Positions 59,341 to 63,435 of a stretch of 64,000 bases of DNA are shown here, piece after piece. The notes beneath the pieces were generated by a model. It was not told the DNA's origin and ran no database searches. It was given only the letters and a program-made list of their open reading frames with translations. The position numbers and the translations under genes were made by a program. Numbering within the stretch: position 1 is the stretch's first letter; each line of letters opens with the position of its first letter. Origin of the DNA: Botryllus schlosseri (taxonomy: Eukaryota); assembly GCA_051294905.1 (NCBI GenBank), contig CM119372.1, forward strand, positions 18,786,001 to 18,850,000, given 5' to 3'.

Positions 59341-62294
59341 ATGTCGAAGCGAGGTGAGATCAAATTAGGGATCGAATCTGAATTCATCGTCTATTTGATC
59401 TTCATGAAAAGACTCCTCATGATGCATCACGGCTCTAATCGTATAAACCCATCTTTTCAGGACGTGGAGGTTCTTCAGGAGGGAAGTTTCGCATGGCCCT
59501 GGGCCTGCCAGTCGGGGCTGTCATAAACTGTGCTGATAATACCGGTGAGAATATAGCTCTAAAACATCATTCCACGGTATAATAATTGCTGATTTTGTTC
59601 GCAGGGGGCAAGAACTTATATATTATTTCTGTCTACGGAATCAAGGGGCGTCTGAACAGACTTCCAGCTGCTGCCGCCGGTGATATGGTCTTGGCAACAG
59701 TGAAAAAGGGAAAGCCTGAACTGCGAAAGAAGGGTTCGTCAAGTTTATAATGTGTCCATGATCGCCAGCTCGCATAACTCGTTCAAGATTTGGACCATTC
59801 AACTTATGTCTAATCTCACTGTAATTTCTAAACAGTCTTTCGAAGTTGCAAATTTCAATTGATATTGTTAATGAGTTGGATTCAAATTATTTAATTTTTT
59901 ATTGATTGAAAGGAGTGCATCATTAGTTGCCATCATCAGTTATCTTATCACTTTTGAGCCATGTGCATAATTTGACACTTGGATTGTTCCTGACATCTTT
60001 CGTTCATTGATGAGAGTTGGCTGTACCACCCCATTCTTATGATATGCATCACTGATTTACATCTAAAAGCAACAAAAACCGTTAAACGACAAATATGCAG
60101 CGCATTGCAATTTCAAGAAAATGATATTCCCTGTATTTGGCTGTGTTTGGCTGCATATTTAAATAGTATGAGCACATCACACATTGAAATCGTGCATATA
60201 AGCTATTGAATCAATCTGACATATAATTACTATGATGAACCTGACCGGATGTAATTTTGTTCTCGGTTGATTATGGGATAATAGGGTCGTTAAAAAATGA
60301 GTTTTCAGATTCTGGGGATTCACTGATTAAATTGTCAAATTTCCTAAATAAATGCTGCATACCAAATTTTGCTCGATTCCAACCAGTCGAAGCCAATGCA
60401 GAGCCAGTTATAATTTTTGACTTTATTATAAAAATGAGAAAATGTATTAAATTTTACTGTTGATTGAGTTGCCTAAAAGACCAATGCATTTCAATTTTTG
60501 CTCCATTTTAACCAGTAAAAGCAAAGTTACTGCAGTTAAAAGTATTAAATCTCAAAAATAAAATTGACTTTGGAAACCCAGAATTAATAATGAATAACTA
60601 AATTGCGTCAAATTTGTTAATAAATCTGTTGTTAATTCGTGTGCCTAATTGTTGATCCAACTAATATTTAGGCCTGCTTTTTCGTGATTTGTAGCATGGA
60701 AATTCGTGTTATATTGTGAGAAACTTTTTCCATAACATTACTAACCATAAATATCTTGTGAATTCGTAATACCAGCATCACACCTTGGCATCCCTACTTC
60801 ACTCAACCCCATTCAAAATATTTTGAATGTCATTTTTGCACAAACGCGTCAATAACTAATTGATCTATTACCTAGTCCTAGATCGTCGTTGTAAATATAG
60901 AGAAGATTGTATATGTAGGTGAACAGATTATAGCGCTCGCCACCTCAAATTTAGCAAAGGATTGCCTGGTGTCGTATTTTCTACAAATGAATGAACGTCT
61001 GTTACAGTCCTTTCATTACTTCATACCACCTTGATGTTGATATTTTCTCGATAAAATTTGTGGATTGGATGCAAATTACAAGAATGCTGATATGTTTACA
61101 AGCAGTTGAATTGTGTTTGATGACATGTTTTTCCGTTGAAAGTGTCAATTCTATTGAGTAGCCTACATATTAGAGGTTCTCGAACTGTTATGCTAGACTG
61201 AGTCGATGGTCATGTACGCCGTGAATACTTTTGAATGTTGATTCATTTTTCACGATTATTAATCTTATTTATGGTACAAGCACAGCAGATTCGCCTTATA
61301 GTGTGCCATTGTATGACTTAGTCCCCTAGTTAGTGCCTAAAATGTTGAGTCTTTTCGCCGAGTAATAGAACCTGGTGCGTGCCACGATGGGAGGCTATAC
61401 TTACATCAAACAAATGTGCACTGCAGAACATATATCACAGCACAGTCTATATTTTGAAAAATTGCGACCATTGAATTCACACCCTAAACCTTCTGGCCTT
61501 CAGATCTGCCTTAAAAACTATATACATGTACTTCGATCCAAATTCATGGTCAAGACTCGTGCATTTTAACATGGTCTGTGAAGATCTTGTGCTGTCAAAC
61601 ATCATACTTGTATGAAGCTGGCATTTCTATGGTAACTAATCACGAATCCAAATACCTCAATGGAAAATCAGAATTACGTGCTATAATATCAATATTGTGC
61701 CGTGGTTTGACAGGTGAAAAATCCGCATTGTCGCATGGAATAATTCTGGTATCATACATTTCAGGCAAATAGTGTAAACCTTATAATTATAATTCACAAG
61801 GGCGCTGGAACCAGGAACCACTGGTATAGCAATTTATATATGTGCAATTGTGCAGTTACATGAGCAATATGCCACTTTAACGAGCTTGGATTGTAATTCA
61901 AATATAATTTTTAGTTCATCCCGCAGTCGTTATACGGCAATCTAAAGCGTATCGGAGGCGGAATGGAATATTCCTATACTTTGAAGACAATGCTGGGGTT
62001 ATCGTAAACAATAAAGGCGAAATGAAAGGTAAGGCATCTTACAGAAGTTCAAATCTTGGTTTCTATTTGAATGTTCTGCGATGATGTTCACATCTTTCGG
62101 GACTGATATCTTATGCTGACGACTTATCCTGAGCAGAGCCAAGACATAGCTTGGGAGTTTTGGGACTACAAGCTTGGTTTTCCAATTAACAAATGCACTC
62201 GTTATTTATAGGTTCGGCGATCACTGGACCAGTCTCCAAGGAATGTGCAGACTTATGGCCAAGAATCGCCTCAAATGCTGGATCGATCGCATAA
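59341..62294 (+). CDS. RPL23: 60S ribosomal protein L23 (uL14), 140 aa; exons 59341-59353, 59461-59544, 59605-59733, 61915-62028, 62212-62294
   Basis: [140 protein letters not shown]. Exon sizes 13+84+129+114+83 = 423 nt; AATAAA at 62315. Confidence 0.97.
60283..60650. mobile_element. Decayed member of the 13338/36943 foldback family in RPL23 intron 3
   Basis: ctggggattcactgatta...ccaaattttgctcgattccaaccagt...gcagagcca matches 36960-37050. Confidence 0.6.
62075..62137 (+). ncRNA. SNORD2: C/D box snoRNA, SNORD2/snR39B-like (guide for LSU rRNA Gm; yeast G805, human G1522), copy 1 in RPL23 intron 4
   Basis: Terminal stem tctgc/gcaga, C box ATGATGT (62081), guide CATCTTTCGGGA, D' CTGA (62103), C' ATGCTGA, D CTGA (62129). 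The guide is complementary to conserved LSU CCCGAAAGAUG, and the D'+5 rule points to the G. The CATCTTTCGGGACTGA core matches human SNORD2 as recalled. Confidence 0.88.
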
Positions 62295-62571
62295 TTTCCA
62301 GTTCATTCACTACAAATAAATTGCTAAAATTCATGTCTTTGTAGTGTTTGCGTTGTATGTAAGTCACTTTTTGAGCTCGATTGGTAAGTGTAGATGCACT
62401 ATATGCTACTAGCTTGAGGAATACAGGATCAGCTATATGCAAGTTCATCCAGAAGTCATTTTTTGACAGTCGAAAGTGTATATAACTAAAGGAATGGTTC
62501 GTATCCACACTTGAAGATAATTAAGGGTTAATTGTCTGTGATCAGGTCAAGTGAAAGGTAAGGCACCTTAA

Positions 62572-62602
62572 TTGATGATGTTCACAATTTGTGGGGCTGA
62601 TG
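62572..62602 (+). pseudogene. Degenerate SNORD2-like copy 2 (C box and mutated guide only)
   Basis: ttgATGATGTtcacaatttgtggggCTGA: several guide substitutions, and the C'/D half and terminal stem are missing. Confidence 0.6.
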
Positions 62603-62685
62603 CCTCGTTCAAAAAAATACCGGTCAATTATTCAAGACTGCGAGCTTGGATCTCAAGATTTAAATATGTATGTACTTTGTAACAG

Positions 62686-62740
62686 GTTTGGTATTCACTG
62701 GACCAGTCTCCATCTCCAAGCAGTGTTTACTGCATCACAC
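62686..62740 (+). pseudogene. Decayed copy of RPL23 exon 5 (unit 2)
   Basis: aacag|gtttggtattcactggaccagtctcc versus atag|gttcggcgatcactggaccagtctcc. Confidence 0.75.
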
Positions 62741-62866
62741 CAGCTTAACACTGAAGCATATTAAAGGATGAATATAATGCTACGAAAATATTACAGGAGT
62801 TGTAAGCAATCGGGACAAAATGTGAGGCGGCTTTAACAATTTTGAATGCTGGTCTCTTATGAATTT

Positions 62867-62929
62867 TCTGCAATGATGTTCACATCTTTCGGGACTGATA
62901 TCTTATGCTGACCAATTTTCCTGAGCAGA
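62867..62929 (+). ncRNA. SNORD2: SNORD2-like C/D snoRNA copy 3
   Basis: tctgc-a-ATGATGT-tcacatctttcggga-CTGA-tatctt-ATGCTGA-ccaattttc-CTGA-gcaga; guide identical to copy 1. Confidence 0.85.
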
Positions 62930-62994
62930 GCCTGTAGATTGCCGGAGACTGCAAATTTGGTTTTCAGATTAGCAGATGTACATATATTTGACAG

Positions 62995-63030
62995 GTTTGG
63001 GCCAGTCTCCCAAGATCGCCCATTCTGCAT
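62995..63030 (+). pseudogene. Internally deleted copy of RPL23 exon 5 (unit 3)
   Basis: gacag|gtttgggccagtctcccaagatcgcc retains the start and the ccaagaatcgcc part of exon 5. Confidence 0.6.
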
Positions 63031-63212
63031 TGCGCTGTATCGTGTATATACGCGCGATGTGATGCAGGGCTGAGAAGCATTGGGTCGTTGTTTGTCTGAA
63101 CGTCCAAACAGTAGCAAAGCAGGAATCGACAACACGGGAAGTATTGTGGACGAACTGGCCGAAAAACAGGTAAGGTACCGCTACGTGCTAATGTTGGTCT
63201 CTGTTTCAGTTT

Positions 63213-63277
63213 TCTGTGATGATGTTCACATCTTTCGGGACTGATAGTCGAATGCTGACTGAATTTATCCTGAGCAG
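63213..63277 (+). ncRNA. SNORD2: SNORD2-like C/D snoRNA copy 4
   Basis: tctgt-g-ATGATGT-tcacatctttcggga-CTGA-tagtcga-ATGCTGA-ctgaatttatc-CTGA-gcag; guide identical to copy 1. Confidence 0.85.
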
Positions 63278-63348
63278 GACTTTCATATGACTCGAGAATT
63301 AAGGCTTGGTTTGCAGATTACATATAGCCTATTGTCATTTTTTTATAG

Positions 63349-63435
63349 AATCATCAATCACGGGACCAGTCAAACAAACGCAGTGTGCGGACCCATGACC
63401 AAGAATCGACTAACTTTGCTACACAAATATTTCAA
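63349..63435 (+). pseudogene. Decayed copy of RPL23 exon 5 (unit 4)
   Basis: atag|aatcatcaatcacgggaccagtc...gtgtgcggacccatgaccaagaatcg translates ESSITGPVKQTQCADP* (TGG to TGA); the downstream caaatattt replaces caaataaat, so the poly(A) hexamer is lost. Confidence 0.75.

Follow-up and report, generated by a model that had tools for sequence, protein, structure and literature searches.

A tandem array of decayed RPL23 cassettes with predicted SNORD2-type snoRNAs behind the RPL23 gene of Botryllus schlosseri

Non-coding host genes for small nucleolar RNAs (snoRNAs), such as UHG, GAS5, other SNHGs and Drosophila Uhg, have no conserved exon frame, carry conserved snoRNAs in their introns, possess TOP-type promoters and are spliced. 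Duplication of intronic box C/D snoRNAs in cis, including duplication by way of part of the host gene, has already been described (PMC2653536; PMC8178906), and in the mammalian SNURF-SNRPN/SNORD116 and SNORD115 arrays tandem exon-intron repeats with intronic C/D snoRNAs extend the transcript of an upstream gene (PMC11028025). Analysis of a 64,000-nucleotide window of the B. schlosseri genome (contig CM119372.1) identified a locus that shares features with each of these systems: three degenerate copies of a cassette from the 3′ part of the ribosomal protein gene RPL23 lie directly behind that gene, which makes four tandem units with the genuine one.

Like the cis-duplicated C/D snoRNAs, the RPL23 array reflects local recombination within one transcription unit, with a single snoRNA in each intron and with boxes and guide conserved. 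It differs from them in that its copies lie behind the poly(A) site rather than in introns of a coding region, in that the introns are flanked by decayed coding exons of the host, and in its dependence on read-through. With UHG- and GAS5-type hosts the array has in common one snoRNA per intron, snoRNAs better conserved than exons and a TOP-type promoter, and its tail RNA is spliced in part, apparently polyadenylated and probably prone to nonsense-mediated decay (NMD). However, it is a 3′ extension of a working coding gene and not a separate gene, one of its three tail introns is seen spliced, and its abundance is very low. The SNORD116 and SNORD115 arrays show the same succession of a coding gene and tandem snoRNA-intron repeats that extend the upstream transcript, but they consist of dozens of units with orphan guides, whereas the RPL23 array has three units and a canonical rRNA target; its repeat exons can be traced to coding exons, and it shows no sign of imprinting. 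No RPL23-SNORD2 array was described in the literature searched.

The RPL23 (uL14) gene (59325..62333; this and all features below are on the forward strand) has five exons. Its assembled coding sequence specifies a protein of 140 amino acids, Pfam PF00238 matches its exons, and RNA junction reads, numbering in the hundreds to thousands, support each of the four introns. Transcription starts at about 59325, where the template-switch oligo ends in RNA reads; C59325 is followed by TTTT, a TOP-like start that agrees with a 5′ TOP promoter. The gene has its poly(A) signal, AATAAA, at 62315, and tails start at about 62333 in RNA reads. The genuine unit comprises exon 4 (61914..62028; translation and junctions 59732>61914 and 62026>62210, cut +2), the last intron of 183 nt (62029..62211; a GT..AG junction supported by over 400 reads in run X23 and about 5900 in run X21), which contains snoRNA copy 1 (62074..62138), and the last exon with the 3′ untranslated region (62212..62333; RNA and translation), with its stop codon at 62293-62295.

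Unit 2 contains a complete pseudo-exon 4 (62443..62557; about 65% identity to exon 4), a relic intron (62558..62685) and a pseudo-exon 5 (62686..62760) that has acquired an insertion and a stop. In units 3 and 4 the exon-4 sequence is represented by its last 40-55 nt. Unit 3 consists of such a remnant (62777..62821; blastn aligns 61976-62217 with 62777-63000 at 69.8% identity), an intron-like segment GTGAGG..CAG (62822..62994) that contains snoRNA copy 3 (62866..62930), and a pseudo-exon 5 with a 10-nt deletion (62995..63060). Unit 4 consists of a remnant (63128..63169; 61986-62271 aligned with 63128-63411 at 67.5% identity), an intron (63170..63348) with snoRNA copy 4 (63212..63279), and a pseudo-exon 5 with a premature stop (63349..63530) that forms the terminal exon of a read-through RNA. 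The introns of all four units open with GT and close with AG, and a TGGRCCAGTC block is kept just 3′ of each acceptor. No further cassette unit was found by blastn between window positions 55000 and 74000, and a snoRNA search of the genome found no other copy outside the array. Alignment and sequence thus agree with the four units and introns of the original prediction, and alignment and translation bear out the stops and deletions that it reported in the exon copies. Its description of the unit as intron, snoRNA and exon-5 copy holds as far as it goes, but the exon-4 part had been overlooked.

On the strength of their sequence features, copies 1, 3 and 4 are SNORD2-type box C/D snoRNAs. Against the Rfam SNORD2 covariance model (RF01299; gathering threshold 37 bits), copy 3 scores 37.2 bits and meets the threshold; copies 1 (33.8 bits) and 4 (27.8 bits) fall below it, with local E values of 3.8e-4 and 0.016. 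Copy 2 gave no RF01299 match in the covariance-model search; it has kept its C box and D′, carries a mutated guide and has lost the 5′ stem, C′ and D. The guide and the C, D′, C′ and D boxes (AUGAUGU, CUGA, AUGCUGA and CUGA) are identical in the three live copies, each of which has a 6-bp terminal stem, and counting on the sequence gives distances from D box to acceptor of 79 nt (copy 1), 70 nt (copy 3) and 75 nt (copy 4). These shared elements, the intact GT/AG ends and the spacings had all been predicted, and SNORD2 had been named as the family to compare with. As in the Rfam family (yeast snR39b type), the guide and D′ equal the consensus and the box order and terminal stem are alike; the difference, apart from the two scores below threshold, is the host, which here is RPL23. 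The human host of SNORD2 is presumably EIF4A2. The guide is a perfect 11-nt complement of CCCGAAAGATG, which occurs in the rDNA of this genome in 39 copies. The D′+5 rule picks the G of ACCCG within ACCCG-AAAGAUGG of the large-subunit rRNA; the predicted methylation site is the G of ACCCGAAAG, which we take to be the yeast 25S Gm805 (snR39b) site.

Same-strand RNA extends over 62353-63534 with a depth about 1% of that in the RPL23 exons, and the 2.2-kb intron 3 of RPL23 has a depth of 0 in both X23 and X21. The tail RNA occurs in poly(A)-primed single-cell data and is apparently polyadenylated. Its 3′ end lies at about 63508-63535 (a 3′-tag peak of X21 in the bin 63338-63534 and the end of an X1 contig at 63508), past which depth falls to about 0. 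Of the words found only in the array, 25-55% occur in each of eight probable RNA assemblies, which come from two studies. Splicing of the unit-4 intron is supported by the predicted junction 63169>63349 (GT..AG; 3967>4147 on L004, cut +2), found exactly in five reads with four start places, all in X21, and, indirectly, by contigs from two further studies (runs X1 and X3) that break exactly at the intron ends. In X21 read depth falls to 2.2 within this intron, from 14.8 and 37 in the bins on either side; the corresponding depths in X23 are 0 and about 3. The other two predicted tail junctions, 62557>62686 in unit 2 and 62821>62995 in unit 3, are absent among the RNA junctions listed, and an X1 contig (62363-63169) crosses both introns unspliced; introns 1 and 4 are thus the only ones of the four units with RNA junctions.

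Among the loose read ends listed, none marks a start site of the tail's own, and the promoter is that of RPL23 itself. Use of the array as an alternative last exon was considered and rejected above about 0.1% of junction reads: the normal junction has about 5900 reads and the list extends to junctions with 5, yet none of its entries connects the donor of exon 4 with an acceptor further downstream. The tail is therefore read-through. Depth, rather than single molecules, indicates that exon 5 is continuous with the array in RNA. In such an extended mRNA the stop codon lies about 260 nt upstream of a possible next junction and well upstream of the unit-4 junction; from this geometry the transcript is probably destabilized by NMD and hence under-counted. 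Because the tail amounts to just about 1% of RPL23 mRNA, its snoRNA output may be negligible beside that of copy 1.

Identity between the live copies is 86-94% in the snoRNA, compared with 50-63% in the pseudo-exons and intron flanks (Fisher p about 1e-6 to 1e-7; 3e-7, 1e-6 and 8e-8). Copies 1 and 3 differ at 0 of 49 functional and 4 of 16 non-functional positions (p 0.003). Copy 4 has three functional changes, all in the stem and each with pairing kept. In the C′-D spacer 3-5 of 9 positions differ, and the boxes and guide are invariant in copies 3 and 4. Bases specific to one copy lie at about 62912-62920 in copy 3 (C′-D spacer) and at about 63246-63268 in copy 4 (D′-C′ loop and spacer). Since the snoRNAs are so much better conserved than their surroundings, with changes that fall in spacers and loops or preserve pairs, these comparisons point to purifying selection having kept copies 3 and 4; selection on the snoRNAs rather than the exons was anticipated by the original prediction, as was the persistence of GT/AG ends. 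Copies 1 and 3 also share a 40-nt identical run that takes in the D′-C′ loop, which is presumably neutral, so some gene conversion is possible; simple gene conversion is disfavoured because the spacer diverges at a neutral rate. The array had been described as nascent, a host being born. Its pseudo-exons are just 50-65% identical to the parent, a divergence of about 0.5 substitutions per site, and by this sequence measure the array is old rather than nascent.

The explanation that we favour, and consider rather probable as a whole, combines an old duplication, selected snoRNA copies 3 and 4, and a read-through tail of RPL23 that supplies back-up snoRNAs. A 3′ cassette of RPL23 (the end of exon 4, the last intron with its snoRNA, and exon 5) would have been copied three times in tandem, the copies landing directly 3′ of the RPL23 poly(A) site. 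The exon copies would then have decayed and the unit-2 snoRNA died, while the snoRNAs of units 3 and 4 were maintained by purifying selection. At steady state, about 1% of RPL23 transcription would pass the poly(A) site, cross the array and stop near 63.5 kb. The unit-4 intron would be removed using the GT and AG inherited from RPL23, with the excised intron yielding copy 4 in the splicing-dependent way usual for such snoRNAs; copy 3 may derive from splicing at a lower rate or from trimming that needs no splicing. All live copies would direct 2′-O-methylation of the same G in the large-subunit rRNA. RPL23 would thus carry a non-coding host tail made of its own decayed exons and bearing back-up copies of its snoRNA.

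Several other readings of the locus were weighed. False expansion of a single cassette in the assembly, or a mapping artefact, is exceedingly improbable, and no observation spoke for it: outside the snoRNA the units differ by 35-50%, about 19 runs from eight studies hold words of the array, and units 2 and 3, as far as the unit-4 donor, are contained in one 802-nt RNA contig of an independent run (about 98% identity), so that the array is not a product of assembly. A more serious possibility, though in our judgement an unlikely one, is that the units are dead, the RNA is read-through noise, the unit-4 splice sites are intact by chance, and the resemblance of the snoRNAs results from short-tract conversion by the highly transcribed copy 1. 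The low level of the tail, the unspliced contig over units 2 and 3, and the 40 nt of unbroken identity between copies 1 and 3 that include the D′-C′ loop would all fit such a relic, and the death of the unit-2 snoRNA shows that copies can be lost. Yet conversion would also even out the C′-D spacer, in which the copies differ; it does not account for stem changes in copy 4 that keep pairing in every case; and copy 2, which is as near to copy 1, received no rescue.

It is also conceivable, but quite improbable, that the tail acts in cis, as an unproductive, NMD-prone RPL23 isoform that tunes output, with the snoRNA introns kept mainly for their efficient splice sites. A stop codon that precedes the unit-4 junction seen in RNA by more than 50 nt, the survival of splice sites in unit 2 despite its dead snoRNA, and the conserved block just past each acceptor are in keeping with this role, but about 1% of transcripts would have a tiny effect on RPL23 output, and base-by-base conservation of guide and boxes would be left unexplained.

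The preferred account, that of selected back-up snoRNAs in a read-through tail, places the array in a gene that was already a host of this family. Among RPL23 contigs of four other organisms, one (L128) carries one SNORD2-like snoRNA in the corresponding intron and lacks the array, which indicates that the association of RPL23 with SNORD2 predates the array; the other three (L131, L132 and L133) have no SNORD2-like snoRNA. A metagenome scan gave no match to the exact 26-nt string from the C box to D′. The 16-nt guide plus D′ occurred in that scan at 120 loci, mostly plant- and fungal-type snoRNAs together with chance bacterial matches, none of them beside an RPL23 exon. Searches for close relatives returned only distant RPL23 fragments with the exon-4 open frame, and no match with an antisense open reading frame across snoRNA copy 3.

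Since local duplication of C/D snoRNAs together with pieces of their host has already been described, the array is a clear but not unprecedented case of guide-RNA multiplication and involves no new mechanism. As a tentative and broader suggestion, which we regard as doubtful at present, the locus may preserve an intermediate stage of a general pathway towards non-coding snoRNA host genes, in which a cassette is duplicated past a poly(A) site, its exons decay, and read-through, possibly regulated by the choice of poly(A) site, uncouples extra snoRNA from protein output. Two of the organisms examined have a SNORD2-family snoRNA within RPL23. In B. schlosseri a single locus, with its parent gene still working, displays the conversion of coding exons to throw-away exons of a snoRNA host around an intronic snoRNA under selection, and is well suited to teaching how non-coding hosts of snoRNAs originate.

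The RPL23 (uL14) gene lies on the plus strand and starts at C59325, followed by TTTT, as placed by template-switch oligo ends. Its GT..AG introns (59352-59458, 59544-59603, 59733-61913, and 62029-62211) are each joined by hundreds to thousands of junction reads, and the joined exons encode a 140-aa protein; the 3′ end has AATAAA at 62315 and poly(A) tails at 62333. A TTG insertion directly before the stop codon (62290-62295; GCA TAA to GCT TGA TAA) is present in roughly half the reads from a bulk (X23) and a single-cell 3′-tag (X21) RNA data set and in a contig of a third data set (X1); the protein end is the same in both alleles. 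The last intron contains a box C/D snoRNA (copy 1, 62074-62138).

Direct-repeat search, alignment, and blastn agree on three extra copies of the cassette downstream of RPL23, and no further units were found within 55000-74000. The fourfold repeat of the RPL23 tail in the original prediction is thus confirmed as a whole: the four predicted intron-like segments (62029-62211, 62558-62685, 62822-62994, and 63170-63348) are present, all with a GT start and an AG end. The repeat unit had been given as intron plus exon 5; the repeat is real, but the true unit is larger and takes in exon-4 sequence, with a whole exon-4 copy in unit 2 (62443-62557; 65% identity to exon 4) and its last 40-55 nt in units 3 and 4. 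The exon-5 copies are damaged, as had been described, by stops, an insertion in unit 2, and a 10-nt deletion in unit 3. The 10-mer TGGRCCAGTC is found just past the acceptor in all four exon-5 copies (62225-62234, 62699-62708, 62998-63007, and 63362-63371), the remaining pseudo-exon sequence having decayed; the 10-mer may act as an exonic splicing enhancer. For 5-6 nt it is also complementary to the intron motif that lies upstream of the snoRNA (see below).

Against Rfam SNORD2 (gathering score 37), copy 3 (62866-62930) scores 37.2 bits, copy 1 33.8, and copy 4 (63212-63279) 27.8; copy 2, a dead relic with the 5′ stem, C′, and D gone and the guide mutated, gave no match. A search across the 495-Mb genome found no snoRNA copy outside this locus. 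The guide 5′ of D′ is a perfect 11-nt complement of CCCGAAAGATG, which is found, in its conserved surroundings, in 39 copies of the rDNA of the same genome; the target predicted by the fifth-nucleotide rule is the G of ACCCG, which we take to be the site of yeast snR39b (25S Gm805). Conserved intron motifs flank the snoRNA, YTGGTYTCT upstream (62054-62062) and CTTGGTTT followed by AGATTA downstream (62172-62188), and units 3 and 4 have them at the corresponding positions. In the RNAalifold model, an outer stem forms between the upstream motif and AGATTA, with two compensatory pairs in an alignment of just three sequences; the motifs may serve as an external stem for processing or mark the branch-point region. 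As predicted, the distance from D box to acceptor is 79 nt in copy 1, 70 nt in copy 3, and 75 nt in copy 4; PMC8162545, citing Hirose and Steitz, gives a preferred snoRNA position some 50 nt upstream of the branch point.

Copies 1, 3, and 4 are 86-94% identical to one another in the snoRNA and 50-63% in pseudo-exons and intron flanks (Fisher p = 3e-7, 1e-6, and 8e-8). The four differences between copies 1 and 3 fall at 4/16 non-functional and 0/49 functional positions (p 0.003), and those of copy 4 affect the D′-C′ loop, the C′-D spacer, and three stem positions, all with pairing kept. That selection acts on the snoRNAs and not on the exons, as had been proposed, is well supported by sequence comparison, the changes sparing boxes and guide. 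Gene conversion could also keep snoRNA copies alike, and some may have occurred, given that copies 1 and 3 share 40 identical nt in a row; however, the spacer changes at an approximately neutral rate while boxes and guide stay frozen, which makes simple conversion a poor explanation. The array had been called nascent, but flank divergence of 35-44% (approximately 0.5-0.65 substitutions per site) indicates that the duplications are old relative to neutral decay. Among the differences listed (14 more exist), strain variants include a 9-nt deletion and two substitutions in dead copy 2 (62610-62640) and another two substitutions in copy 4, within its neutral loop (63247-63250), with none in copy 3; counts this low do not allow a statistical test.

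RNA was mapped to a reference stretch (L004; L004 position + 59200 = window position). The tail is covered on the RPL23 strand in both X23 and X21 (62353-63534), with a depth near 1% of that of the exons in X23 and below this in X21; DNA background cannot account for it, since depth in the 2.2-kb intron 3 is 0. Splicing of the predicted tail introns is borne out for unit 4, where the GT..AG joint 63169>63349 has five X21 reads with four start places and intron depth drops (2.2 vs 14.8 and 37 alongside in X21; 0 vs approximately 3 in X23). In X1 and X3, two earlier assemblies made in separate studies, contigs end exactly at the unit-4 splice sites, as expected of coexisting spliced and unspliced forms. 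For units 2 and 3, no intron-removing junction is among those listed, and an 802-nt X1 contig (62363-63169) crosses both introns unspliced. Splicing of the exon-4 donor onto an acceptor farther downstream was rejected, being absent among the listed junctions, which reach down to 5 reads (normal junction, approximately 5900); this identifies the tail as transcription reading through from exon 5. Coverage stops near 63508-63535, where no canonical poly(A) signal was found. Two studies also supply eight assemblies, probably of RNA, in which 25-55% of the array-only words are present.

Farther downstream, a convergent minus-strand gene (approximately 64126-65100; L004 4926-5900) ends 3′ near 64126 and contains an intron at approximately 64463-64995 (CT..AC joint, 44 X21 reads). 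Many high-depth X1 and X3 contigs match a segment of about 36 nt at approximately 64692-64728 (L004 5492-5528) before passing into unrelated sequence; the segment probably belongs to a dispersed repeat or to a highly abundant RNA.

No close relative turned up in metagenome scans or in ORF-based searches. In a more distant organism (contig L128, plus two Logan runs), the same RPL23 intron (L128:656-1276; approximately 620 nt) contains a SNORD2-like snoRNA (30.9 bits; L128:771-839), as a single copy approximately 437 nt from the acceptor, far outside the usual 70-80 nt, and with no downstream array; the host association is thus older than the array, which is lineage-specific. Three other RPL23 loci (L131, L132, and L133) have no such snoRNA. 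In each of three plant-type metagenome contigs (L028, L065, and L115), two snoRNAs that bear the same guide lie 450-770 nt from each other, the polycistronic layout usual for the SNORD2-type family in plants.

The original prediction is thus partly supported: selection is well supported and unit-4 splicing is seen, but the array is old, the tail transcript rare, and both the splicing of units 2 and 3 and mature copy-specific snoRNAs putative. Box C/D snoRNAs mostly owe their multiplication to local recombination inside the host, and partial host duplication can also give rise to copies (PMC8178906; PMC2653536). SNURF-SNRPN/SNORD116 likewise has exon-intron snoRNA repeats downstream of a coding gene (PMC11028025). 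The RPL23 array is a good illustrative case of an already known kind of event rather than a surprise.
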